NCBI GenBank assembly: GCA_964057225.1
Contig: OZ059897.1
Span: 14,818,001 to 14,882,000, forward strand
Direction of reading: 5' to 3'
DNA length: 64,000 nucleotides
DNA from: Auanema rhodensis
Lineage: Eukaryota > Animalia > Nematoda
Shown: piece after piece, positions 5,724-45,467 of the stretch
Layout of the letters: the number at the start of each line of letters is the position of its first letter
Numbering within the stretch: the stretch's first letter is position 1
Notes under the pieces: model-generated
What the model was told of the DNA's origin: nothing
The model's input: the letters and a program-made list of their open reading frames with translations, nothing else
The model's database searches: none
Made by a program: the position numbers and the translations under genes

Positions 5724-8700
5724 TTAGTCGCTTTCAGCAGAACCGTCGTCCTCTTCATGCTTGTCATCATCACTGTCGTCATCGGATCCTAAGTCAAATT
5801 CTTTTCGTTGTCGGTCCTCCGCCGACTTGGACGACTCGTCTTCTTCTCCGTAGTGGATAGGCAATACAACAACCTGATTCCTGGCTTCCTTATTTACCTA
5901 AACGATAAAAAATGGGGTATGAACCTTCTATTTCCGCAAAACATACCCACCACCGGCCTTCACGATGCTCTTGTCCAGCAGCGATTCCCACAAGTTTTCC
6001 ATCTGGAGAGAAACAAATGCTGTTAATAAAACCGTCCTGAAAACATCGTTTAGAGAGTTTTCTTCACAATACAACAACAATTGAAATGACCAAATTGTCC
6101 TTACCACATTATATTCATATACTTGTAGTATTCGTTTATAATCTGGAGATATTTTCCACAACTTAAACAAGCCGTCATCGGAGCCGGTAGCCACCAAATC
6201 TAAAAACAAATAAACGTCACAGCTGCTTCTCCATGTGAGGGAAAATAAATAAAATATCAACTAACCTGAATAAGGAACAGCTGCGATTGAAACCACCCAT
6301 CGAGCTTCACCGGAATCACGCAATCCGTGGATATTTTGTCTTACGGCAACAGGCTTTTTCTTCCACAATGACCAAAGACATAAAGTTCTAGAAATAAAGA
6401 AAAAAGTGGAAATAAATAAAAAATATAGGAAATAATAAAGTAGAAAGAATAAAAAAATGTTTTATAATTGGGAAACGGAAACTATTTATATGGGACTACG
6501 CATGACAGTCTTATCAAGTGAAATGCAAAGCTGACTAAAATCAGAGAGCACTTGTCGTTTAGACGTTGGAATCAGCTCAAAACAGAAACGTCACTTTTTT
6601 AATATTGCAAAGAAAAAAGTTGTAGAAAACTATCCTCAAAACAAAAAAAAACATTATGTCAACAGGTATGCCACTTATGTCATGTATATGAAACAGAAAA
6701 ATGTGCTAAATAGGAAAGGGAGGGAGAATGATGGTCTGATGATAGAACTATCAAATACTAGAGCATTGAGGCATGCCCAACCAGCAGAACAAACATGATC
6801 AGGACAATTGGTGAGGACAGAAAGAGCGGAAGAGAAAAAAGGCCTGCAAAACTGGTCGTGAAGGAGAAACACGGAGATGCAAGAGATGAGAACGTAAGGT
6901 GGTTGAACAGAAAGAAATGAATGACTATGGATAATAGAGAGGAAAAATTCGAGAGGGATTTTGTGCGTCAGACTCTCGTTCATCGCGAAGAACAAAATAC
7001 ATTTTAGAGAGATTGCAAAAGAAAGAATCGAGCAGGATATGATGTACTTGGAGGCCAAGTCCGTTGAAATGAAAAGTGAAGAGAAGTTTGAATGAGAACA
7101 ATTTTGACAATACCAAGGCAGGCATCAGTTAAAATTGTCATTCAAAAGTAAATAGAGAATATGAAAGAGAAAAGTATGGGGTTATAGGACAGCGTGGCTG
7201 ATTGATAAGAGAATCAATGGGAGAGCGTGAATCAGTTGATTTTGTCGACCGCAAACTTATTATAGCTACAGCGGAAACGAGAAGAAAAGAGATCGGTTTT
7301 ACAAGCAAGTGTAAAATTAAAAAAAAATGACATTACTCGACAAAAAACAAACAAATTTCGCCTTTTCGTCAAATTTTTTTCAACTAAGAAATTTCAAAAA
7401 TGCTTTCTATTTGCTTGAAAATGACTTGGCATTGAATAAAAGAATACTACTAACCCTGAGGATGATCCCGATACAAAATGATCGTCATTCAGCATAGCAA
7501 CACAATCCATAGTAATACATCCTTGCGGGCCCGTAAACACCTTACAAAGAAACAAGAGATTAGCGGTGAGATGAACAAGACTATTATCTAACCAGTTGGC
7601 TTTCATCTTCAACTTTCCACAATCGGCATGTCCTGTCTTGAGCGCCAGCTGTCAATACTCGTTGTTTTTGAAGAGCACTTAGGGATTGAACAGAATCCTG
7701 ATGCCCAAACATAGTGTCTACCATTCCCATCTGATCTAGATCCCATAACTAGAAAAATAGTGATGATACAGAAAGTCCAACATCTTGCTTACTTTAACTG
7801 ATCTATCCCTACTAGCACTGAATAAGCAGTTAGTTTTCAATTGGAAACAAAGAGCAGTAATAGGTGCACGATGTCCCTTGAAGTCATGAACATGTGCTAG
7901 TGTTTCGAAATTCCAAATCTAAAATCATAAAAATCTGTCATAAAAATCAAAGTTTGTAGAAATATAAACCTTCAACACATTATCAAAGCCACCACTGGCT
8001 ATGAAGCGACCATCAGAAGAGATAGCTACAGCAAAAATATGGCCATAGTGAGCGTGTTGTTCTGTGTCGTTCTTTTTTGTTCGTTTAATAACTCCAACCA
8101 CTTTCTTCTCTATTAAACTATCTGTAAAACAGAAATGTATAATCACCGATAACAATAGAAACGCAAAACGAACATTTAACAATACTAGATTCTTTCCCAC
8201 AACTAATGACATACTTCGAACATGGTGAAATAGCTATACATAATGGAGTAAACCTAAATTATTACTGATTACAATGAATATCTAATAGTGGCACTGTGAT
8301 AATAAAACTATTAATAGAATTCACGTAAGAAGATAACATTAACAACTAACCTATGAGCCTTATAGTTAATTTCTTCTTCATCTCGCAACTCTGCTTTATC
8401 TGCTAATTCAATTTTCAGTGTTCCAGCCCGTTGGGCAGCATCCTCTCTCAACAAATCTCCAAGGTCTTCATCTTCTTTTTTTTCTTCCTTGAAAAGTGAA
8501 ATTTTACATAGATCCGTAAAACATGATTGCTTACCTCCAACTTGGACAACAATTGTTTAGCCTCTCTGTATGTTCTCTCGTCAACATTATCGTATTCATT
8601 TTCACTAGCTTCCGATGCACTTTGATGACCAATTGAATCTTCATCATCAGATTGAATTTCAGTACTAGCCATTAGTCGCTTCCTTCTGGACAGTTGCACC

Positions 8701-9020: not shown

Positions 9021-11749
9021 TCAATTGGCTTTAAGAGCCTCAACCACTTCAGGAGTTAATAACTCTGCGCTCAATAAGGAATTTCTCAATTTTCTGAGAG
9101 AATTGCCATTATTCGAGATCCAGCTTGTGATTATTGCTAACACATTTTCTTCAGCCTAAGAGTAATAAAATCAGTATGTGATAAAAAAAACTAGAAATTC
9201 AATACCTTTTTCTCAGCATCTTTCTGGTAAGCAGGGTCTAATGCATTAATCAATGCATCTACCTTTTCACTTAACATACTGCTCAATTTATTACGAGTAT
9301 CAAGGGAAACTTCATGATCTGGCCCCGGCGAACTAGATCTATATTAAATACATAATTAAATTAATTATTGCAAGACTAACCCTTCCTTTTCTTTGAATTT
9401 CTTCAAAGATTGTTCAACAAGTTTTCTTGCCTCCCTTTCTTCTCGTTCAATTAGCTCGTTTTTGAACGTCTAAATTGAAAAAAAATTATATTTTATTGAA
9501 TTGAAATAAACATACATCCATCTTTTTGCCAGTATCTATCATAGTTTTTTCAAGAAAACTTTTTATGTTAGTAGTTGGGGTGCCCACAGTACAGCTGAAG
9601 TATTGAGAGCTTTCCAATAACAGATAACGACAAGCTTTCCACATATAAGACGGATTATTGACGGATCTGAAATTGCAAAACATTTATAATACTACAATTT
9701 GCTTTGTCTTACTTGTATTCTTCTTCAACTTGTTGTTCAGGGTCAAGTTCGTCCAAAGGATCCCTCAAAAACGTCTCAAGATCCGGAGTGAATTTTCTAA
9801 ACACTACTTTGAAAGTAATAATATTAAAAGAAAACAAAACCTTTTTTGAGATCGACAAGCAGCTAGGAGATCCGGCTCAATATTCCACAATTTATTTAAT
9901 TCGCTACTACCCAAATCAATGACATTAACATCAAAGCCAACACGAGGTCGTCTGTAATTATATAAGAATAATGATGAAAATCTTAGAAGAATCACTTTCT
10001 ATAAAGATGCATAGGCTGATTGTCTATAAAAGTGCTCATGTCGGGACAACTTGAATTCTTCCAGGAAGACCATTCCTTTTCTCTCAGAAGGATCGCCTTT
10101 AATGTCATTTAAATTCTCGAAACATTGTGTAAAAAGAGTTACCTTTACACTATCAACAAAAGCCGAACCTCTTGGATGAGTTTCTTTCAATAACTTATAG
10201 CACTTATCAGTATTTTCATTCACAAACCGAATTTGGTCTTCTGCTAGAACATGTACCTTCCTGAAAATAAAGATAACTTTATCATTTCAATTGGTACATA
10301 CTGCTTCATTTTCACATCCGCCAATAAATACTGGAAAATTATGACACATTGAATGAGGAAATATCGTCGAAATTGTGAATCATTCAATTGAAGTTGTAAA
10401 AGCTGAATTTCCACTATTAAAGATAATTAGATTAAATCAACGTACTTTAGGACTGGTTAAATATTTTGCAAAATACATTTCTGAGGATTCATTAGTAGCT
10501 TTGCTTGCCTAAAGCATATAAGAAAATAATGAAATATTAGATAAGTTACAAACATTACGACTATGTTTCTCATCATCACCATTTTTCTCCAGTTTATATG
10601 TGGCAAATGTAGTTAATACTTCTGATATATTCTATAAATAATTTTAAAATTTAAAACTTTTAGTTCAGGCAAATGTACCTTTTGGAAAGTGGCAAATTTG
10701 GTTTTATCAAAACAGTCAATAGGATTTGAAAAATATGATTGCAATTGCCAAAACATGGAGTAAAGCTCTTGCGTAACAGGAACGGTAGAATCTCTATATA
10801 GTATCAAATAAATTAATACACATATATAGTGTAATTCAAAATGTTCAATACATTTAGGAATATTGAAAAACTCACTTAGATTCTTTTATCTCTCCCATCT
10901 CTAAATCCTCATCAACAACTGTGAAAGTAGGCATGAGATCAGTGGCTTGAATATCATTCTGAACAATAATTACATTAAAAAAATAGTTAATTTTAATTTT
11001 ATACCATTTCATACTGTGTAGTGTTCAACGTATTAAAATGACCCATTAAATTAACTCCTGACTTCTCTCCCAATGATAAAAATCTGAATATTTCTTTAAT
11101 AACAATACAATTAATTTGGTGTTGAACTAAACCTGCTCAAAAAAAATAATATTCTTCCGCAAAATGAAGTTTCAACAGTTCTACTCAATCGTTTTAATAA
11201 ATCATTGCACATTCGTAAGACCGAGGTTTGGCATGGATCTCCAAGTGGAGGCTTAAAATTTAAAAACTAATTTCGGTGGTTTATAACTTATAAACAAAAC
11301 CTGTTTAAGAAGACCAATATTTTCCTCAACTATATCAAATAATTTCTCACATCTATCAATTTTACTAACATCAAATATATCCTGAAGCATAGTGACGGAT
11401 AATGATTTCGTTATATATCCTAAACACTCAGTAACTCAAAGATGAGCTTTATATTTAAATTACCTTGCTTACAGAGTTCAACCACAAAAACAAAATGGTT
11501 TTTAGCACAGTCTTTGAACTCATTGTCTGACATATGAGCTATATTCAAGGCTCGTGTTCTTATCTCACGTTCAATTTTACCAACAAATGCTTCCCCAGTT
11601 CTTAAACTACTATTTCTTAATAAATTTCAGAAAGCAATAATTTTTGGATTGCGAAGATATTCGCCCATAAAATAATAAAATACAAACCCCTTTTCGGAAA
11701 AAAGTTGTTTAAGAGATTCAAAATCCCCTTTTAGTATGCATTCTTCCAT
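9021..11749 (-). CDS. thoc-1: THO complex subunit 1 (THOC1/HPR1)
   Basis: Signature VLRMCNDLLKRLSRTVETSFCGRIIIFLSRFLSLGEKSGVNLMGHFN; also LYSMFWQLQSYFSNP and DLGSSELNKLWN. Confidence 0.9.
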
Positions 11750-24601: not shown

Positions 24602-27600
24602 ATGGTGGACCATTTGGCTGTCCTTAAAAGATTCGTTGGTAAGAATTATAATTTTATTTTATTTTAATAAGAAAATGTTTAAATCTGTTCATTTCAAATT
24701 AATTTAATTCAATTTATGATTTCATATTGAATATATAAACCTTTTCAGGTAAGACTGATACTCCTTCAACAATCGAAAATAATCCAACTGTTGAAGATGA
24801 AGTTGATCGAAAAAAATCAAGTAAGTATATGTTTTTATTTATTTAATTTCTATACATACGAATATTCCAAAAAAAACATATTATGGCTTGACATATTCAT
24901 AATCTGACCTCAAGTTTATGTATAGCCGTCTATAGGGCTAAAAGACATATGAATTGCTACAAAAGGATCAAGGGATGATCGGATAAGATCGTCTGTCTCG
25001 TCTTATACTCTCTGTTCTGCTTATCCCTGATGTTATCTCTCAGACAATCTCTTATCATTCTTATGAAGGCAAAAAACGTTTTCTTTTGTAGCTTTATTTT
25101 ACTTTTGTACTTATGCTTTACCTAAAAATTAGAAAAAAAAAAAGAAAAATTGATGTTATCATCACTTCGGTTTTATATTTATATTCATAATATTTCTACA
25201 ATATTTATAGAATTTTCCGAACAAAATTAGGAAAACGCCATTTTTATAATTTTTTCTATTCATGTTTCTTCTTTTCTTATACTTTTGAGAAATATCTAGA
25301 AATTATTTCTCTAATATTCCAATGAGCATATTAAATATTGTGAGAACATCAATCTTTCAAGAAACTTTCTACATACTCTCTCTCTCTCTCTATCTCTCAT
25401 TTTCTCACTCCTTTCTATTTCTTCATTGCCATGTAGACATTTTATGTACAGTATACCAACAGGATGAGGAATTACAAGGACATTTATTAGAGAAAAAGAC
25501 ATAAACAGCTATTAGATCAATGATAACAAATGAAAAACTTAATATTTGAACAAAAGCTGACAACTTAACGCCACACAATTATCATAGTAGATAGTTAAAG
25601 TGAGAAGACACTTTTGTATTTTTCGTTTTCTTGTCTTCCTATCTATCCAACTAATTTTGTGGGAAAGCATGTATGGTTCGCTTCAGTCAACTTGTTATTT
25701 TTCTTATGACTGGCTATTACTTCTTTTAAAAAAAAATCTACAAAACTTCTTCAATATATATTCAATATCTTATTTTTTTCAGGTTTAATTAGGCGTAACG
25801 AACTTATCTGTTTGTCTTATCTAACACTCGCTTACTTTATTCCAGTTATTTCAGCTATGACAGTAACATATAAGGGTAAGCCAAGAGATTTTGAATTTTT
25901 TTTTATTTTTTAAAAATTAGAAAATTTGTTGACTACTTCAGAATTTCTTTAACAATGACATATTGATTATTCATAACATTGTCATTGCACTACATCAATA
26001 GTTCAGAGAAAATTTAAAGATTATAGATGAGAATTGAAAAATATTTCAAATATAATAATTAATTTCACTTCAAAATCTCCTGAACATTGTACTTGAAATG
26101 TAGCTTTTTGTTCTCCAGGCTTGCTTCGACGAATTCAAGATGGTTTTAATGAGTTGGATGGAAATTATATTGAATTGGCTGTTCTTTACTACCTTTTCTT
26201 CATCGTTTTCATCAAGTGAGTTTAATTACAAACAGTCTGCTCGTTCTTCTCAACTCACGCTCATTTGTTCTTTTGTTAGCAAAAACCTTAGAATATTAAG
26301 AATCTAAAAAATTGAAAATATAATTTTTGAAATATGTCTTTTGCTTCGCAAAAAAAAGTTTTATGTTAGAATTATCATTTGCTTTCAAAATGAACATATC
26401 ACGCACCAATGTCATTGAGACTACTATTCAACTCAGACATACCAGTGTGGCCTACGTCGTTTTAATGCTGATGGTAATCCATACAACGTACACTTTCTAC
26501 CACACTCGTTTACGTAAATATCCACCTGGACCTGTACCACTGCCCATTCTTGGAAATACTCTGGAGGTTTGGTTATCTTTATTTATTTATTCATGTTCTT
26601 CTGATCATCACTATAGAGAATTTAAATTTTTAAATTTCAAAAATGGATTGTTCAAAAGTTATTTTTTTTGAATTAACGCTATGAGCGGTTGATTACACCA
26701 ACTAAACATTTTGCTGATTTATTTTGATTTCTTTAGATTGATACACGTCATCCTGCTAAAACATTATCTAAATGGCAAGCGAATTTCGGACCAGTCTTTA
26801 CTGTCTGGCTACCACATCCTATGGTCGTCATAGCTGATCATGATGTATTAAAAGAAGCCTTAATAACCAAAGGTGAGATTAAAAATAAAGGAATGTTTTT
26901 TTCAATAATTATCTATGTATTCAGGTCATTATTTCACTGGGCGTCCAGTTGGTTATATTTGGTCTATGTTCACGCATAACGATAAACATGGTGATGGCAT
27001 TATTTTATGCGAAGGAGAACGTTGGGAACAATTACGCGAGTTTTCACATAAAATATTTAGGTTAGTGCATAAAAGTATTCTACAGTATCCAGAAATTTTT
27101 ACTGTAATTTAATAATATATTTTAAATATAAGAAAGCATTCATACTGAAAGATATAGCAATTTTAATTTTTTTTTCTCAGAAGTACGATGGGAGAATCCT
27201 TAATGGAGCAAAAAATTCTCACTCATGCTCACAACATGGTTAACTATATTGATCGTTTGATGGGTGACCAAAGAGTAAACTATATTTCAAAGTTGTAGCA
27301 CTTACCGTATTCTATTTAAGGAAATTACTATGGATATCGAGAGTGTTATTTCTCAAGTTGTTGGAAACATCATTCAAGATTTTGTACTGGGAGATTCGTA
27401 TCCATTTGGAGATGAACGTTTTGAGAAATTTAAGAAGCTAATTGATGCTGTCTTAGCTGATGTAATATCTAATCTGTATTGACTTCGTTCAATTTAATAT
27501 GTTCCAGGTTGCATCTAAGCCTGTTCAACTTGTTAATGCTTACCCAATATTATCCATTCTTCCCATTCCTGCGATCAAAAGATATCGCAAAAATGGATAT

Positions 27601-34695: not shown

Positions 34696-35383
34696 CTTAT
34701 CCTCTTTCTTTTCTTCTTTCTTTTCTTCCTTATTTTCTTCTCTCCTATCTTCACTTTCTTCTTTTCTTGTATCATCATCTTTCTTCTCTTCTTTTTTATC
34801 ATCTTTCTGCTCATTATTTCCTTCTTCTCCTTCCTTATTGAAAATATATGAATATTATGTGCTATGTTATAACAGTTACTTTTCTGAATTCTATGTATAA
34901 GCGTTTTGTGCCATCTGGATCGCCTTTGTGTTCGGACCAAGCACTTCTCGGGTAAATAGCTTCTCCCTTTGGCTAAATATCAAATTTAACGATATTTTGG
35001 TAAAAATCTCCAACCTTTATATAATATATGGCAAAATAATGTTTATTACTTTCAGGAATAGGTTTACCATTATTGAAAGTTAACTTCAATTAGAAAAAAT
35101 GAAGCGTGTTAATAATTGTGTATAAACCTACGTTTACAACGACATTTTCATTGGGTTTTATGCTGGAAACGGGAGGGCGAATACGAAAAAGATCATTCGA
35201 TGTGCATTTAACCTGTGTAACAAATTTTCATCGTATATTTTCATAAAAAAATACTTTTGCTGCAACCCTTTCTGACAAGGGATTTGTTATAGTTAGAGTT
35301 GTAGTAATAGGTTCCTCCCCTATAGTTTTACTACTGAAGAGTATTTTTTCACACGGCTCAAGCTTAAGTGAAAAATCAGTCAT
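34484..35383 (-). CDS. MSP-domain protein with a Glu/Lys-rich tail
   Basis: MTDFSLKLEP..LTITNPLSERVAAKVKCTSNDLFRIRPP..KPIPESNKHYFAIYY is a Motile_Sperm domain, followed by (EEKK)n. Confidence 0.88.
34590..34728 (-). repeat. 12-bp coding tandem repeat (TTTTCTTCTTTC)n encoding EEKK
   Basis: About 11-12 near-identical units are directly visible. Confidence 0.95.
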
Positions 35384-35477
35384 GATTACGACCACGTTGA
35401 AAAATAATTTTTTCAAAAAATAAAATTTACGTGAACTATTTTTCCTATTCACGTTATTTGAAGTTATCAAATATTTA

Positions 35478-35560
35478 GAGCGGCAAATTATAAACGCGCT
35501 TAGTTGCGAAAATCGCGCTCCATTGTATAAGACTTGAATTTAAATTTTTTTTCGAAAAAG
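35478..35560. promoter_or_regulatory. Compact bidirectional promoter between the MSP-domain gene and mtr-4
   Basis: Start codons are ~230 bp apart. The region carries GCGGCAAA, TTGCGAAAATCGCGCTCCATTG and TTTCGAAA motifs. Confidence 0.5.
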
Positions 35561-35614
35561 TATATGTTTCAATCTTTTTATTAATTTTTGCTAGTTATCG
35601 AAAACATTGTAGAA

Positions 35615-38600
35615 ATGGACGTTGATGATCTGTTTGATAGTTTTGGAGGTGGAAATGATGATGTTAAGCCTTCTACCAGCACAGAAGATAAGATGAAAAG
35701 GGTATGCTTGAGGGTTCTAACGTTTTATTGAAACTTCTCATTAAGTTGGAGAAAGAGAAAGAGGATAAATCTCGAGCAATGGCTCAAGATTTTTTGCTAC
35801 AACTGCAGCAAGGAAATATGGGAACAGCTACAGATGCACCTTCAAACAAAAGAGTATGTTTTTATCACGGTAGTAAACAGAATACCGTTATCTTAATAAG
35901 GCTAGAGTTGAACCAGAGGAAGAAGAGGAAGTGGAAGTCTATGGAAATGAAGCTGATGTTAACAGAATGAGTACGATCACAATTGAAACTGGGAATGAAA
36001 ATTGCACACACCAGGTAGATATATACATTATAGTGAGCATTGAGCATTTTTTGAATATAGGTTTGCTTGCCTGTGAATTATGAATATCAACCTCTAATTG
36101 ACCGAAACACCCCTCCTGCTAAAGAGTATCCGTTCCAATTAGATTCTTTCCAAAAGGAAGCCATTGTTTGTATTGAAAATAATCAATCAGTTATGGTCTC
36201 AGCTCATACTTCTGCTGGTAAAACAGTCGTCGCCTTGTAAGTCAAGCTTATTTTAAAGAATCGTTTTTTTCTTATTGTTAAGATATGCCATTGCACAATG
36301 CCTACGAGATAAACAAAGAGTTATTTATACCTCTCCTATTAAAGCTCTCTCTAACCAAAAATATCGTGATCTTGAAGAAGAATTCGGAGACGTGGGCTTA
36401 ATGACCGGTAAGCATTTCTAAATCCATAAGATTTTTTATGCATGTAATAAAGGTGATGTAACTCTTAATCCCGATGCTTCATGTATTGTTATGACAACTG
36501 AAATTTTGAGATCCATGCTCTATCGTGGGTCCGAAATGATGAAAGAAGTAGGTTACGTAATTTTTGATGAAATTCACTACATGCGTGACAAAGGTAAAAT
36601 AAGCTTGCTTTGTATAACCAATATTTTATTTAAAGAAAGAGGTGTAGTTTGGGAGGAAACAATTATTCTGATGAGCCCAAAAATTCATCATGTCTTTTTA
36701 TCTGCTACTATTCCTAATGCTGAACAATTTGCATGTAAGTTAAAATTATATTTTCATCTTTTTTTATTTTTTTTGAAGTGTGGATAGCTTATCTTAAAAA
36801 TGTTCCTTGCCATGTTATATATACCGAATATCGTCCCACTCCCTTACAGCATTTCATTTTTCCTTGTGGAGGGGATGGTTTGTATGAGGTTGTGAACATG
36901 CAGGTAAATAATTTATTTAGGAATTAGTTTATAAAATTTGTATTGCAGGGTATCTTCCGTGAAGATAAGTTCAACCAAGCCATGAGTGGCCTGGCTGAAG
37001 TAGGAGACAAGGCAAAAGGTCCTCAACGCGGACGAAAAGGCGGAATTCAACGTTTGTTAAATAATTTTCTATCTGATAAATTACCTGCTTATAGAAGACT
37101 CAAATATTGTTAAAATCATTAGAACTATCAAAGAACGAGACATGCTTCCTTGCATTATTTTCTCATTTAGTCGAAAGGAATGTGAAGCTTATGCTATTTC
37201 ATTAAAAGATATGGATTTTAACAATGGTTAGTGTTTTATTCTATATGTGTATATGTTTGTGTTTTTAGACGAAGAAAAAAAAATGGTTGAAGAGATTTAT
37301 CATAGTGCTATTGATCTTCTTTCGGATGCAGATAAAAAGCTTCCACAGATAGCTCAGATTTTGCCACTTTTAAAGCGTGGAATCGGTGTTCATCACTCTG
37401 GTTTACTTCCACTTTTGAAAGAAGTTATTGAGATTCTTTTCGGCGAAGGACTCCTTAAGGTTTTCAAGCTCATCATTATCAACATAACCTGTATATTTTT
37501 CAATTTAGACTTTGTTCGCCACTGAAACATTCTCAATGGGTCTCAACATGCCTGCCAGAACTGTATTTTTCACTTCTGCAAGAAAATATGATGGAGCAGA
37601 TCACAGGTAAGCATTGTATCACAGTTTTAATGAACGAAATTGTTTATAGATGGATCACATCTGGAGAATATATTCAGATGTCTGGTCGTGCTGGTCGTCG
37701 TGGTAAAGATGATCGTGGATTAGTAATTCTTATGGTTGACTCGAAAATGAGTAGTGAAGACGCTAAACAAATTATCAAAGTGAGTGTCGTTACTATTAAA
37801 GAACTATATTGTATTTCTTATTTTATAGGGAAAAACTGATCCATTAAATTCACAATTCCGTTTAACATATAATATGGTATTGAACTTGATCAGAGTTGAT
37901 GGATTTAATCCCGAAACTATGATGAGGCACAGTTTCCGCAGATTCCAAGCTTTGTGTGAAACACCCAGACTAAACGAAGGTAAAACAAAATGGAGATGAA
38001 ATTAAAAAGTGAAAATATTTTCAGAACTGAAAGAAAAGGAGCAAGAAATTAAGAAAATATTTGTTGAAAAAGAATCTGAGATACAAGCTGTGGTGGATAT
38101 GGAGAAACAAGTATGAATTTCCGATCGGTACATATCAAACTTCTTATAATTTAGATGCGTATTCTAACTGACACTGTGAAAAAAATTGTTACCCAGCCGA
38201 AATACCTTGTTCCTTTCCTTCATGCAGGAAGATTACTTCATGCACGAAATTTTTTAGTTCTTTCTAAATTTACTTGTTTTGTTTTAGATTAAGGCTGGTA
38301 GTCACGATTTCAGTTGGGGAACTCTTGTAAATTTTGCTCGAAAAACTAATCCTGACGACAGTTCGCAGTTAATTTTCATTATTGAGGTTTGTTGTAAAAG
38401 TTAGCAATGTATCATATTGTTCTTTTAGGTTTTGATTGGAGTATCACCTGCTTCAGCGGGTGAACGTAGCGCAGGGAGTGTTCGACCTCCTAAAAGTGGT
38501 GAACCGGTATTATACAAACATTTTAATTTAATTTGTATGACATATTATTCAGTCAGTATGGGAAGTGGTCCCAATGACTCTTGAATGCATTGATGAAATT

Positions 38601-40160
38601 AGTGCCATTCGTATCAAGCTACCTCAAAACTTAAAGCCGGTTGAAAATCGAAAGGTTGTGGAACAAATGATCACGGTACTTTTTGCGCATGTGCTTAAAT
38701 AATTTTATATAATCTCAGGAGGCCAGAAGACGATTTAATAGCAAGCTACCATTATTACACCCTGTGAATGACATGAAAATCAGTGAAGAAGTTCTTCAAC
38801 ATTCTTTAGAGAAGGAACAACAACTTAAATTACGTTATGAAGAACATCCACTCAGGAAAAGAAAGGATTATGAAACTCTTAGAAAGACGTTCGAAGAAAA
38901 AGTTTTATCATCTTATGACTTGTTTAATTTCTAGAAATTTAGGAAGTGAAGCGTCAGGAATTACAAGTTTTACGTGACCGTTTGAAAGAAACTAACGAGC
39001 TTATTGGTCAAGTTGAGCTTGAAAATAGGAAACGTGTATTGAGAAGATTACAATATTGTTCGCAAGATCTCACGATAGAACAAAAGGTAAATTGGTTTAT
39101 AGTTGATTGTATTTGTATATGTGTGCCTTACAGGGACGTGTTGCATGCGAATTATCAGCAACAGATGAACTAATGTTAACTGAAATGTTGTATGGAGGAG
39201 TTTTTAATGATTTAGCTCCTGGTCATTTGGTGGCTCTTCTTTCCTGCTTTGTTTTCCAGGTTTTTTTTTCCAAGGGCAGTTTAACGTTTTTTCATTAAGG
39301 AGAATGGACAAACCCCAAAATTGGCTGATGAGCTATCAGGATGCTTACGGAGTTTACACGTAAGTGAAACTAATTTTGTAATGAAGTCAATTGGTACCTT
39401 TCTTTATCTAGGAGTATGCTCGAAGAATTGCTAAAATTTCTAATGAATGCAAACTTGAAGTCATTGAGGACAAATATGTTGATTCTTTCAAAGTACGGTT
39501 ATCCATCTCTACAAAATCATTTGATTTCTTCTGCAGGCTGGATTGATGGACGTTGTTTATAATTGGGCTAATGGCATGTCGTTTGCTGAATTAGTCAAGA
39601 CCACAGATGTTTTTGAAGGTTTGTTTAATTTCCTAGACCCCTCATTCAGTAGGTTTCTTGCGTTTGCTTATGATGTGGGTTGAGATATTGTCCGCTAATC
39701 GGATAGTAGACGGTATTCCGATCCAGTGTCAATCATGCCTTGCCGACTTCTAGGAGACAGATTGACTTAGTGACGAACCTTAGGTTGGCTGCCGATGCGG
39801 CTACTTTTATATAGTTTGGCACCCTGGAGCGCTTAACTGAGTGTTGAACCGAGACATTGATGAATGAACAAACTGTTTCTATTCTATTTGCCTGTTCACG
39901 ACAGTCTGTGATTGGCATTGACTCCAGCTCTATATACTAATCTTCCCTCATCGAAATTGCTAATTGATTGAAATAATGTGAATATTAAACATTGTATTTA
40001 AGGATCCATCATCCGTTGTTTCCGACGTCTTGAGGAAGTTCTAAGAGAGATGATCAACGCTTCTAAAGCAATGGCTAATAAAGAATTGGAAGACAAGCTG
40101 GAAATAGCTAGAACTAAAATTAAAAGGGATATTGTGTTCGCTGCATCTTTATATTTGTAA
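35615..40160 (+). CDS. mtr-4: Exosome-associated DExH RNA helicase MTR4/SKIV2L2
   Basis: [61 protein letters not shown] and the C-terminal [11 protein letters not shown]. Confidence 0.97.
39631..39994 (+). ncRNA. Putative structured intronic ncRNA (H/ACA-like 3' domain) in the last intron of mtr-4; family unassigned
   Basis: A 384-nt, GC-richer intron (39619-40002) in a gene whose other introns are ~45-60 nt. Many helices include G-U pairs that work only on the + strand. ANANNA at 39934-39939 and ACA at 39989-39991. Confidence 0.6.
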
Positions 40161-40809
40161 CTCTTACCTCATTTGTATCATCTCGTCTAGAAAGTTAAGT
40201 AATTTTAATCAGAACAATCCAATTGTTGTTGTTATTTCATATATTATTTTGTTATTGTCCTACGTGTCTCTAACTAGTGTTGTTGAGTTTACTTGGAAAC
40301 GCGTTGTTTTAATTAATATTCCTTTGTTAGGTCGTGTTTTAGCAGTGAAAATCTACCGCATACAGTAATCCAAATTCACAGCAGGACTTCTTAATGCAGT
40401 TTCCAACTGTGCATGTCTCCGTAATAAATGATCGTGTTTTTGAGGAAAATGGAGAAACTTCGAACTACATAATTATTAACTATTTGAATTTTGAGTTGAT
40501 TAAGAATCATCACTTTTGTAATGATCGGGCGATATGGGACAGACATGTCGGGGCTTTTTGATAAATGACTTTTCTGAACGTCTAGTTGTTGAGTAGTGCA
40601 CATGATGTGATATCAAGAGATAAAATTAGGAAACTATGTAAGCTTCACCCAACCGGATAATGTTTGCATCAATGAAAATTTTGCGTTATCGAATGAAGAC
40701 TTTAAGGAAGTGACCTATGTTTCTCGAGACAAGGACAGGTTGATGAGAACCGGTTGACCCAGGCGGATTTGGCTGTTTCAATGCTTGCCTAGTTCAAGCT
40801 TTCAGGTGA

Positions 40810-42909
40810 ATGATAGCAGTCGTGCTTCTATTATTTCTACTATGTCCACATGCGTGGGCACAGGAAGCATGTAAGTTAACATATTTTTTCTTTCTCTTTA
40901 ACTTCATATAATTAGTGGAAGTTCCCGGTGAAGACTTGGAGCCATTTGATATTCCTTTAAAAGAATTGGAAAAAGATACCAAGGAAGTTACAACATTAGA
41001 TGAGCAGTGTAAACGATTCGTTAATCACTACAGGTATTTTGAATCAGTTATTTATATTATTCTATTATATCTATTATTTATAGATATTACTGCCGCACTT
41101 CTAATATAGCCACTTATAATGAAGAAGTTCGAATTATATGTGAAAGATATCGAACTTATTGTTCTGATAGAGTATATCCTTCTGTTAATCACGTAATGAA
41201 AAAAAATGTATACACATACTTCTATTTATTATTTCAAGATTCGAAGACAAACTGAATATTGGAAGCAATCTGGTCTTCCTGAATCAGCTATCCGAGCGGT
41301 CACAACGTGCTATTCGAGATGTAAAGAAACTGATCCAGTGTATTTCTTATTTTAATAGAAATAATTTCCATGTTTTTATTTTAGATGTGTAAATTCCTGT
41401 GAATGTATTCACTTACAATGGACTATGGATAACTTTTGTCAACCTGGTATGAATGCACCTGCTGGTCCAAATTGTCAAAGGTATTTGGCTTTTAAAAACC
41501 GTTATTTTAATATACATCCCTTTTCGTTATTTGTTTCTTAAAGTTGAAATGAGATGACTTCCCTAAAACTCATTGAGGGTAGCATATGTCCATATTTGGC
41601 CATCTAAACTGAGCCTGCCGCCTGGTTGAAGTCATATTGTCTCAATTACTCAACTTTTCATTCATCCCTATGGCCTTTTATGGTCATAGACACCTCGAGA
41701 AATGACTTCTCCCATCTGTTGCAACATCCCTGAAACATCATGTTCTTACAAGATGTTCTAGTGAGACATATTCAAAAAATATTTCTTGGCGCTATTGCTT
41801 TTGCAATTTTTTTCATTTTGTTTCACTGTTTGTCTCTTTTTATTAGATTTTTATCGGTTCAAATATAACTGTTGATTTACGGATGAATAAAATTCCAGAA
41901 TATTATAACCAGACGAGAGAATATTTCATCGTTACTCCACCCATCCCTATTTTCCGCATGCTCTCATACTCTAGTGAATGTGTCTCCTATCCATTTCTCA
42001 GACAAGCAAGCTAACTAATTAACACAAAGCGTACAATACATATTAGGCATTCGCGAACAAACAATCTAAAATGGCTTTACATGGGCTTCATCTTTACACG
42101 CCTTATAAGGTTTGGGTAATTGTTTGCAATTCATTCCTCTTTAACCTATTCTTCTCATGTAATCCTCGAAGGAGGCTTTACTATGCATTTTGAGGTTGTG
42201 CAGTTTACTGGTTGAAATAACACAAGAACAAATATGGTCATAATTTTTTATTAGATTAAATTTTCGTCTCCAAAATAAAACAAAAAGTCGTGGATGAGCT
42301 TTAATTAACTTATTTTCAAACAAACATTTGAAGGAAACATTGACGTTTCGAGTACTTTTTTCAGATGGGCTGCAAAATGTCGTGCTGTTTGGAAAGCACT
42401 ACCCGACTATACACCTTTGGATAGACAGTTGTATGGACCCTTCGCACCACCTCCAATTGTCAGAGGAATATTTTATGGATATGATGGCGCCGGTTCGAGA
42501 ATTTTTGGAGTTTTTGATTTTATTGCTAAATATAGGAAATCATCGTGTATTTGATCGTCCTCGTGATCATGGTGTCTCATTCTGGCGTGGAACCAATACT
42601 GTACTTGTCGACTGGCCAGAAGGTTCTTCATTAATCAAGCTGCTTATCTAACATTATTTCAAATGTATGTTGTACTCAATTCATCTTTTTTGTTTCCAGG
42701 AAAGGTCAGTACAGGCACAACATGGGACGTTCCATTCGCAGGTGTACATGGAATTTACAATGCTGTCGATGTTGGTTTTCCAAATCCTCGTCGAGGCTTA
42801 GCAGAACTGACAAAGTTTGAGTTCATCATCTCAACCGTCTGTAGCTTGTAGTTTCAGAGACAACCCAGATCCGCTCAATCCAGGCACTGGTCGGCGACGA
42901 TATTACTAA
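40810..42909 (+). CDS. Secreted cysteine-rich protein of unknown function
   Basis: Signal peptide MIAVVLLLFLLCPHAWAQ. Exons splice in frame through QCKRFVNHYRYYC..ICERYRTYC..CYSRCKETDPVCVNSCECIHLQW..RDHGVSFWRGT..PGTGRRRYY*. One ~880-nt intron (41481-42364). Confidence 0.8.
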
Positions 42910-45467
42910 ACTTTTCCCTCAAAATGTGTTACTGGCCGGAGTAGAAGGAACAGCCATTTGCTGTTTGTGCAATGTACATCATGCTATCTATGTTATTTTG
43001 CTAATAAAGTTCTTAATTAAGTTACAGTAGACATGAAGCTTCACTCTCGTCATCTTTTTCAAGCCTTCTGACTTTTCCGTTCAGGTTTTCAGAGTGACTT
43101 TTGCAAAACAATTGACTCATCTGGACTTCTTTTGTCTTACAAGGAGTATGAGAAAGGAAGGGTTGAAGAACTAAATGGAAAACAAGTATATTCTAGTCAT
43201 TCGACGGATTGCGTGAGGAGGTTTCCTCATTTCTTTTTCTTTTCTACTCAGAAGTATGATATGTATATGAACTACCGTAATACTAGGCGATCAACATGGG
43301 AAGAGAGTGAAGAAGAAGCCCAAATATTAGGTCAAGTGCGATAAACATGTTAGACAACTGAGCCATAAAAGATGGCTTGCTTCTATGTTGATTAGCAGGC
43401 ATGGAACAACAGCAGGATGAAGCTGAAATGTCAAATGGATGAGTGCATGAGCAGTAATTCAGCAAATTCTCTTAAGAATTACTATTTCCTCTACCCACTA
43501 TTTAATAATGATATGTAAGGGGATAAAGACAAAACGGGTATGAGTGCTTGATACAGATCCCAGAGAATACGAATATGATCTAACCAATTTAAAAAAAGTT
43601 GTATTCGTTCATCCGGAACGAACGAACTGTTCCGATGTTGTATGTTGCCGAAACAAGATGAGAAAAGGTAGACTGGCCTTCCGCTCCATTTGATTATGAA
43701 TGGCGTCGTCATGTCTCTTTCGAAGCCGACGTAGGAGTCGACGACGTTTGAAGGCGGCATTGACGATACGACGTTGACCATATAGACACGTAGTGAAACA
43801 GTTGTTGTTAAGTGTTGATGATCGTCACGAAGTGCTAATTGTTCGGCTGAAAAAGTGGCAGTGCGTGGTGTTGAAAGACACCGCCATGGATGCACAATAT
43901 GGTTTTACATAGTTTGCTTCATGATTATAATGACTACTATTTCCAACATTTTTCTCATAAATGATGTTTAACAGGACGGAATGGTTGAATGAAAACTGGG
44001 ATAAATCGGAACCCTGTATAATCCTGAAATAACAAAAAGTAATGGGGTAAATGATGACAAAGATGAATTGAGAATAACGTAAAAGCTTTAATTAGAATAA
44101 TAACCTTCACGTCGTTCTATCGCTTGGATATTTGTATTTTGAAAATTTTAAATATACGGAACGGTTGCACATCGTGGTTGTGCGAAAGAGCAAAAATAAA
44201 AAAACAGTGTATTTCAATTTTACGGGAGAATGAGAGAAAAGAAGAAGGAGAGAATATGCTTTGTTTTCTTAATTTCACATGTTTTAATTGCTTTTTTTTA
44301 AATGTATATACCTAAGTCTATTTTTTTGAAATTGTCTCACAAAAGAAACAGAATTATATCATGTAAATGTTAAATGAATTAGTTTTGATTCTGATTACGG
44401 TATTGTGTTGTACTCGTTTAAACTTAATCTTTACTTAATTTTAAGACCAGTATGCTGTGCTGAGTCTGCGTCGGTTATATGCAAGTGACAAAACAATCAA
44501 AATTACTGTATCGTCTGAAGATTTTCAAAAGATGTTTAATCAGTTAAATTGATTATTTGATTAATTCAGAACTAACAATTATATAAATATTAATGATTCA
44601 TCATAAAGTACTACAAGTAATATGGCTTTACTTGAAAACAACTTCAAAATATTGTAAGTTATGATACTCACATAAATATAATTATGACTGAAATTATTAT
44701 GACTTTTTATTCGTCTAGTAAAACTTTACGAATATGCGGCAGTCAGTGGTTAAAGAAGTCTATAAGGCAAAGTAGATTTTTTGTCTTTAAGAATATTATC
44801 TTATAAACCGAATTTTATAGACTTATACACAAAAAAAAGATTTATTTATTTCAAAAAAATTTATTAAATCTTCTGAAAGAAAGTATATACTTTTGAAACC
44901 ATTGAATGAATAAAGATTGACTGTCAGTTTGAAGAACACTTTGAAATCAAGATCTCAACGGGGGGAAATAAGGTAAGCCTGTAAATTATATTCATTAAAC
45001 AAGTTTGAAGATACAAAAAAAATATTTATTTATCTAAAATTTAACATATAATTTTATTGTTTTTCAAACAATAAAATGTTAAAATAAAAATGAAGTGGTA
45101 CGGTAATTATACTAGAGACATCGGAAATAATTTCACTTTGTGAAGTAAAAGAAAGTATATAGATATTTATATATAAATATATGTTGATTAGGTAATCAAA
45201 ATTGGAAAATACATAATTTTTTTCGTTTATTTTCTGACTTTTGAGAAATTACATATAAAGTTGAAGGCGTGCCTTCTTAGGAGGCGGGGCAAAATGAAGA
45301 CTTTCAATTGGCTGGCCACGCCCTGTTTTCTTTTTACATCAGCCTGGAGGTGCTGCAAATTGCCGAAAAGCGACGAATTTGTCGATCTTCTCATATTGGA
45401 ATAGAACACTGTCAAATATAGTTGGTCTTCATAAATAGAATATTTCTATTTTTTTTCCAATCAACTA

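Follow-up and report, generated by a model that had tools for sequence, protein, structure and literature searches.

The oversized last intron of Auanema mtr-4 probably hides a functional element at the RNA level

The nematode Auanema rhodensis encodes the orthologue of the nuclear RNA decay helicase MTR4/SKIV2L2 in the gene mtr-4, whose last intron is far longer than its neighbours. We analysed this intron within a 64,000-nucleotide (nt) stretch of contig OZ059897.1 (positions 14,818,001 to 14,882,000), referred to here as the window, to which all positions below refer. The oversized last intron probably hides a functional, RNA-level element: as judged from comparison with a related species, its core (39682-39881, + strand) is a real non-coding element under selection.

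The coding part of mtr-4 extends from 35745 to 40160 on the + strand, where the stop codon ends, and contains about 25 short introns. It was delimited by spliced joints in four RNA runs, by tblastn with the MTR4 protein of Auanema sp. JU1783 (P0159) and by the Pfam domains of the orthologues. The RNA data are the contigs of these four runs (X10, X11, X13 and X14), whose library type is not recorded, and contigs cannot show the ends of an RNA. Since the contigs of all four runs omit intron-sized GT..AG pieces (one GC..AG) of 42-49 nt throughout 35745-40160, the runs represent RNA and the gene model is confirmed. The introns of the coding region that could be placed measure 42-53 nt and contain 14-30% G+C, those 3' of 38288 being placed in part only. 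By contrast, the last intron (39619-40002, + strand; GT..AG, with the ends GUUUGU...UUUAAG) measures 384 nt and contains 40.7% G+C. An earlier note on this DNA, made from the letters alone, had put this intron at about eight times the length of its neighbours, and the 42-49 nt pieces missing from the spliced contigs bear this out. The intron interrupts the protein at ...VFEG/SIIR... of the MTR4/SKIV2L2 orthologue; the exon on its 5' side ends in ...GATGTTTTTGAAG, and the exon on its 3' side encodes ...FAASLYL followed by the stop codon, which is the C-terminus of the DSHCT domain of MTR4/SKIV2L2.

For comparison we used Auanema sp. JU1783, the nearest obtainable relative and the species with the closest MTR4. 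Its mtr-4 locus (L001) is collinear with the window across three genes, and its mtr-4 also has a long last intron, of about 373 nt, at the identical codon position. Between the two species, identity amounts to 80.7% in the mtr-4 exons, 59% at the third codon positions of the last exon and 50.5% in 17 short mtr-4 introns pooled. Within the last intron, 52% identity is found in the 5' part (39619-39681), 80% in the core (39682-39881, aligned to L001 ~7098-7300), 41% at 39882-39908 and 100% in an island of ten bases at 39909-39918. The AU-rich tail (39943-40002, + strand) is not conserved (45%) and has no stable fold (z = +0.43). The top 50-nt window of the core reaches 92% identity, and invariant runs of 15, 11, 18 and 22 nt lie within the core. 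Its composition is also distinct, with 45% G+C and up to 51% in 100-nt windows, compared to 14-30% in the short introns and a mean of 32% in the window. Because the core is kept at exon level where the other introns are unalignable, we consider the element to be functional. Together with the base composition, this conservation is the strongest evidence for it.

A hidden exon or coding frame was rejected as the reason for this conservation. No coding frame is present on the sense strand of the core, which has stops in all frames, and the sole open frame of any size, one of 61 codons on the antisense strand of the window, is split in JU1783 into pieces of at most 30 codons. Exact look-up of the small open frames over the last exon and the core returned no database record. 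The element occurs once within the 64-kb window and as a single copy across eight loci, at the orthologous position in the two species; with regard to the multi-copy repeat that the earlier note had allowed for, the window and these loci gave no further copy.

A consensus fold of the two sequences was predicted with RNAalifold and is regarded as provisional; all its parts are given for the + strand. A 5' hairpin (39695-39722) is formed by AUCGGA (39698-39703) and UCCGAU (39717-39722), both invariant, with a loop of 8 nt here and 11 nt in JU1783; an alternative fold of this region puts the invariant CUAAUCGGAUA in a loop. The predicted helix P1, of 10 bp, joins GUGUCAAUCA (39726-39735) to UGAUUGGCAU (39909-39918), and its 3' end lies 84 nt upstream of the 3' splice site. 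This predicted pairing would account for the isolated invariant 10-mer at 39909-39918, which stands between unalignable stretches of 41% and 45% identity. The sole change in the 5' strand of P1, G to A, converts a G.U pair to A-U; the same strand may also pair with GAUUGAC at 39760-39766. Helix P2 (39742-39789) would pair GCCGAC (39742-39747) with GUUGGC (39784-39789) around a loop that contains 27 near-invariant nt predicted to be unpaired (39755-39781), and a C to U change in this helix leaves a U.G pair, which can form on the + strand only. Next to it, the invariant hairpin P3 (39791-39801) reads GCCG-AUG-CGGC. The segment 39837-39879 consists of an invariant CUGAG and then 36 nt with one change, within which lie UGAUGA (39858-39863) and hairpin P5, GAGACAUUG with CAA..UGUUUC in the consensus. 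Further downstream, the sequence CUAAUC (39937-39942), kept in both species about 60 nt upstream of the 3' splice site, is probably the branch site.

In this consensus, 35 of the 39 pairs are invariant, three show one-sided changes, one shows a compensatory change and none is broken, a count drawn from two sequences that has no statistical power. Of the three one-sided changes, two (C-G to U.G and G.U to A-U) pair on the sense strand only, and the consensus energy is -29.7 kcal/mol for the sense strand compared to -25.0 kcal/mol for the antisense strand. The RNA strand is likely to be the sense strand of mtr-4.

The earlier note had described the intron as full of pairings, and every complementary word that it listed is present in its place. 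Complementary words are modestly enriched over dinucleotide shuffles at 6 bp (204 observed, 163 +/- 14 expected) and at 7 bp (91 observed, 64 +/- 8 expected), an excess due partly to a single family (GUCAAUC with GAUUGAC and GAUUGGC); at 8 bp or more there is no excess (28 compared to 26), and the folding energy, given below, does not bear the description out. Alignment of the orthologous intron, proposed in the same note, recovered the conserved core and lost most of the named helices. AUCGGA/UCCGAU is invariant in JU1783 and is the sole unchanged helix among those listed; the hairpin UGGCUGC/GCGGCUA, which P3 overlaps, is kept minus one pair. A different outer stem stands in the place of GAUAUUG/CAGUGUC, and nothing in JU1783 corresponds to UCCUAGA/UCUAGGA, UAUAUAG/CUAUAUA, CUGGAG/CUCCAG or UGAACA/UGUUCA. 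The general idea that the long mtr-4 intron hides an element stands, without the identities as telomerase RNA, RNase MRP RNA or H/ACA RNA that were offered for it; a further option of the note, autoregulation through the helicase transcript, is the main rival discussed below.

Taken together, these features lead us to favour, tentatively, the reading that the intron core (about 39682-39918, 193-237 nt) is a lineage-specific, box-less non-coding RNA gene expressed from the host intron. We call this RNA an orphan because the box C/D and H/ACA signatures are lacking, and an orphan RNA gene is favoured because of the high G+C content, the distance from the splice sites, the placement about 84 nt from the 3' splice site, helix P1 and the strand-specific substitutions. 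That no other mtr-4 intron has RNA contigs on it also counts in favour of this reading. Between the end of the core and the 3' splice site lie 84 nt, and the conserved, branch-like CUAAUC follows the core after about 20 nt; small nucleolar RNAs (snoRNAs) processed from introns typically sit in such a position. The RNA would be transcribed as part of the mtr-4 pre-mRNA, in the sense orientation; after splicing and debranching, exonucleases would trim the intron from either end and would halt at the protein-bound, folded core. In the predicted fold, the 10-bp helix (39726-39735/39909-39918) would clamp a multi-helix junction of P2, P3 and P5, preceded by the 5' hairpin at 39695-39722, and the invariant stretches predicted to be unpaired (39755-39781 and 39844-39865) could be working surfaces for another RNA or a protein. 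Its mode of action would resemble that of an intron-encoded snoRNA or small Cajal body-specific RNA (scaRNA), or of a stable intronic RNA.

An RNA element in the single long intron of a gene otherwise made of short introns is a well-known kind in nematodes. Like the nematode intronic snoRNAs and scaRNAs, the Auanema element lies on the sense strand of a short-intron gene in its one oversized intron, has a G+C content above its surroundings and exon-level conservation, stops about 80 nt short of the 3' splice site and has predicted termini joined by a helix. Unlike them, it has no conserved C/D or H/ACA boxes, no conserved guide adjoining a D or D' box and no Rfam match, and with its 193-237 nt it is longer than ordinary guide RNAs. 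A second likeness is to the stable intronic sequence RNAs (sisRNAs) of Xenopus and Drosophila, box-less RNAs that outlast the spliced intron and are able to act on the host gene; in two runs, the RNA contigs end close to the putative branch site, at 39928 and at 39944. In the Auanema element such survival is putative, and most sisRNAs are not known for sequence conservation to this extent.

Several observations weigh against an orphan RNA gene. The contigs that carry the intron run on into both exons, and their depth is only 3-5% of that of the mRNA, as expected for unspliced pre-mRNA, and no separate abundant intron RNA was seen among the contigs of these runs of unrecorded library type. On the + strand, the folding energy of the intron or of its core is no better than that of shuffled sequence: the minimum free energy compared to dinucleotide shuffles gives z = -0.66 for the whole intron (-1.89 on the - strand), -0.53 for the core (-1.30 on the - strand) and -0.31 for the JU1783 intron (+0.92 on its opposite strand). 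Covariation carries no power either when two sequences are compared and 35 of 39 pairs never vary. The word GUCAAUC has three alternative conserved partners, so that the fold is unsettled. No set of C, D, H or ACA boxes is conserved, hence no known protection of the ends. Finally, blastn, nhmmer and a covariance model (R1) built from the two Auanema sequences detected no homologue of the core in six other mtr-4 loci, those of Caenorhabditis remanei, Diploscapter pachys, Pristionchus pacificus, Mesorhabditis belari, Nippostrongylus brasiliensis and Ancylostoma duodenale.

The intron at the orthologous position measures about 50-70 nt in C. remanei and about 80 nt in Diploscapter pachys, and Mesorhabditis belari has short introns only at this position. 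In Nippostrongylus it reaches 2.4 kb, a length comparable to that of the other introns of the gene, and shows no similarity to the core. A metagenome scan with a 20-nt invariant word of the core gave a single chance match, in a bacterial or phage amidase gene (L008), and a full-text literature search with three 12-mers of the core found unrelated sequences and primers only. As far as these loci let us see, the element would be restricted to this small lineage or would have been relocated to another host gene.

The main rival explanation, which we consider possible though on the whole unlikely, is that the core is a cis element of the mtr-4 pre-mRNA, of which the conserved blocks bind factors or fold so as to slow the removal of the last intron, yielding a detained or retained intron. 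The nuclear unspliced transcript would be spliced later or would be destroyed by MTR-4 and the exosome, which would amount to feedback on the level of the helicase. The RNA data speak for this explanation. The last intron is the sole mtr-4 intron with RNA contigs: the depth of the intron-carrying contigs is 4.9, 7.2, 3.5 and 4.5 in X10, X11, X13 and X14, respectively, compared to 159, 214, 94 and 148 for the mRNA contigs, and they are joined to the exons in all four runs. The unspliced contig spans 39590-40029 in two runs and ends at 39944 and 39928 in the other two. In the bins that contain short introns, depth equals the mRNA depth multiplied by the exon fraction (for example, 119.4 = 0.75 x 159.2), and no intron contig is found there. 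A helicase of nuclear decay, such as the host gene encodes, clears unspliced transcripts of this kind in other organisms. Furthermore, the conservation consists mainly of long sequence blocks and less of demonstrable structure, and the adjoining mtr-4 3' untranslated region (UTR) is 93% conserved.

These points have to be balanced against others. The other mtr-4 introns do not have stronger splice sites than this one: the donor GUUUGU is also found at 37052, in an intron that is efficiently removed, and UAG or AAG acceptors are usual in the gene. The greater length of the intron alone predicts more unspliced RNA, and a G+C-rich core set apart from either splice site would rather be expected of an RNA gene. 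The UTR blocks of the neighbouring gene are equally conserved, so the mtr-4 3' UTR is not special; it has no stable fold (z = +0.79), and the core shows no conserved complementarity with the 3' UTR or the exons. The same features limit the parallel with MAT2A, whose detained last intron is controlled with conserved hairpins of the 3' UTR. The two genes share a last intron with measurable retention and an adjoining conserved 3' UTR, and mtr-4 is also a host gene with a reason for feedback, but the mtr-4 3' UTR has neither the fold nor a conserved pairing with the intron, and the UTR blocks of the other genes at the locus are conserved to the same degree.

We also considered, as an improbable extension, that the core is a sensor of nuclear RNA decay placed within the gene of the decay helicase itself, which would set the level of productive mtr-4 mRNA. 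The lifetime of a box-less intron RNA, or of a detained intron, would then depend on the activity of MTR-4 and the exosome. To our knowledge, no feedback RNA of this kind in a helicase gene has been described in animals.

The conservation could instead belong to the DNA, if the core acted as an enhancer within the intron or as an internal promoter that drives either a short 3' transcript or the downstream gene. We hold this to be quite improbable. It is true that the 10-mer at 39909-39918 reads as a CCAAT box on the opposite strand, that TCAAT-type words are found at 39731 and 39761, and that the next gene begins about 700-900 nt downstream. However, the conservation runs almost unbroken over 200 nt, a pattern unlike that of short binding sites in clusters, and the substitutions favour pairing on one strand. 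Moreover, the contig of the last exon and 3' UTR is shallower, not deeper, than the body of the mRNA in every run (67 vs 159, 65 vs 214, 53 vs 94 and 69 vs 148 for X10, X11, X13 and X14, respectively), so that there is no sign of an internal start.

Very unlikely, in our view, is a divergent H/ACA-type RNA, either a scaRNA or snoRNA or the telomerase RNA of the lineage. Precedents exist, since introns encode the telomerase RNA of C. elegans as well as many snoRNAs (PMC12921731). According to the same source, which cites Takeda et al. 2025, the Caenorhabditis telomerase RNA terc-1 sits in an intron of nmy-2, and this location is limited to part of Caenorhabditis, so that a different host here would not be odd. 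The Auanema element resembles terc-1 in being carried by an intron of a non-ribosomal host gene, in its length in the range of 200-400 nt, in its restriction to a lineage and in having a host intron that is short in other nematodes; unlike terc-1, it has no TAAGCCUAAG-type template and no conserved H/ACA 3' domain. One ANANNA word, the sole conserved one, is kept in both species (39703-39708, AUAGUA here and AUAAAA in JU1783), and the invariant CUGAG includes a UGAG that resembles a Cajal body box.

The sequence tests do not agree with such an RNA. The Rfam scan that the earlier note had advised gave no match at gathering score in the whole window or, one miRNA apart, in seven loci, and nothing meaningful at E <= 10 in the introns of both species, where only chance matches appeared (CRISPR-DR55, Ysr224, Ysr197, mir-9428 and SNORD52); ARAGORN found no tRNA. 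Telomere words were not found either. As the earlier note had already remarked for the GCCUAA template, the sense strand contains none, not even as a 6-nt permutation, which argues against telomerase RNA on the assumption of a TTAGGC telomere repeat; the antisense CCUAAG at 39779-39784 is altered in JU1783. The H-like box (39934-39939) and the ACA (39989-39991) that had been proposed both lie in the unconserved tail, where JU1783 has no ACA, and a 3' H/ACA domain of telomerase RNA was dropped on this ground; the helices of the arm that had been likened to telomerase RNA are not conserved. A long H/ACA RNA fared no better, as neither its boxes nor its hairpins are conserved in JU1783. The conserved ACA triplets, at 39757, 39854 and 39868, are internal: conserved sequence continues past each of them, and none lies 3 nt from an end. 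A box H/ACA snoRNA or scaRNA was rejected, as no hairpin-ANANNA-hairpin-ACA layout fits both species.

Other snoRNA classes were rejected in turn. For a box C/D snoRNA or scaRNA, a conserved terminal C box is lacking (UGAUGU at 39670 is UUGACG in JU1783), as are a C/D terminal stem and a conserved guide sequence 5' of any D-type box. The internal CUGA (39837) and UGAUGA (39858), conserved in both species, could form a C'/D'-like K-loop. U17/snR30 was dropped because no ACA follows the words that resemble its m1 and m2 motifs (UAUUCCGAU and GAACCUU).

RNase MRP RNA hosted in mtr-4 deserves almost no credence: it rested on a tentative statement in the earlier note of a Caenorhabditis MRP RNA in this gene, which the C. 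remanei locus does not bear out, and Rfam RNase_MRP (RF00030) matches neither the window nor L001 at gathering score or at E <= 10, nor the mtr-4 loci of the six other nematodes, while the intron lacks CR-I/CR-V words (GAAAGUCCCC-type or GGGGCU-type) and its orthologue measures only about 50-80 nt in C. remanei and Diploscapter. In those six loci, Rfam detected no non-coding RNA except one miRNA. Judged by these motif and family searches, the element would be neither telomerase RNA, RNase MRP RNA nor a standard snoRNA, and appears to fit no described family.

Further observations concern mtr-4 itself. A GC..AG intron at 38242-38287 is supported by spliced contigs in all four runs, and the acceptors of the gene are mostly UAG or AAG, compared to the CAG customary in C. 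elegans. In run X11, the mRNA contig extends 5' to an exon that ends at 34950 and is spliced to 35612 (window 34922-35611); because it joins these two positions, the 5' region of the transcript contains a 661-nt intron. An 80-codon antisense open frame (35228-35470) lies within this interval. At the other end of the gene, the 3' UTR from about 35 nt past the stop codon to the AAUAAA and poly(A) site (40196-40450) is 93% identical to that of JU1783, compared to 81% for the exons; on either side, in the 35 nt next to the stop codon and beyond the poly(A) site, identity falls to about 47-49%. The conserved part is rich in U and G, with UUGUU words that recur; no conserved open frame was found in it, nor any similarity in other genera.

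Similar blocks occur in the gene downstream of mtr-4. At 42012-42150 (L001 ~9550-9690), about 125 nt are essentially 100% identical; the block contains AAAATGGC, then 13 codons and GT, and also one TTAGGC word. It looks like a 5' UTR with a first coding exon of which the silent sites are conserved too. A second segment, at 42950-43050 (L001 ~10460-10562), lies directly 3' of the downstream gene's stop codon, as that gene is called in L001, and is 90-98% identical; strong conservation of UTRs may be widespread between these two species. In the interval 40736-40914, RNA contigs of a downstream gene set in about 250-300 nt past the poly(A) region of mtr-4, and a 44-nt intron lies immediately 5' of the ATG at 40915; the spacing of the two genes would fit an operon-like arrangement. 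In P. pacificus, the mtr-4 model (L004 1501-30494) covers 27 kb, with another MTR4-like gene behind it in head-to-tail order, and a mir-8364 precursor is found at 24631-24691 of that locus on the antisense strand.

If the core is an RNA gene, it would be a box-less, lineage-restricted addition to the RNAs that nematodes carry in their rare long introns, telomerase RNA included, and it would show that such genes can be located with no more than intron length, G+C content and one sister genome. If the core is a cis element instead, it would give a first indication that a nematode adjusts its nuclear exosome helicase via the last intron of the helicase gene itself.

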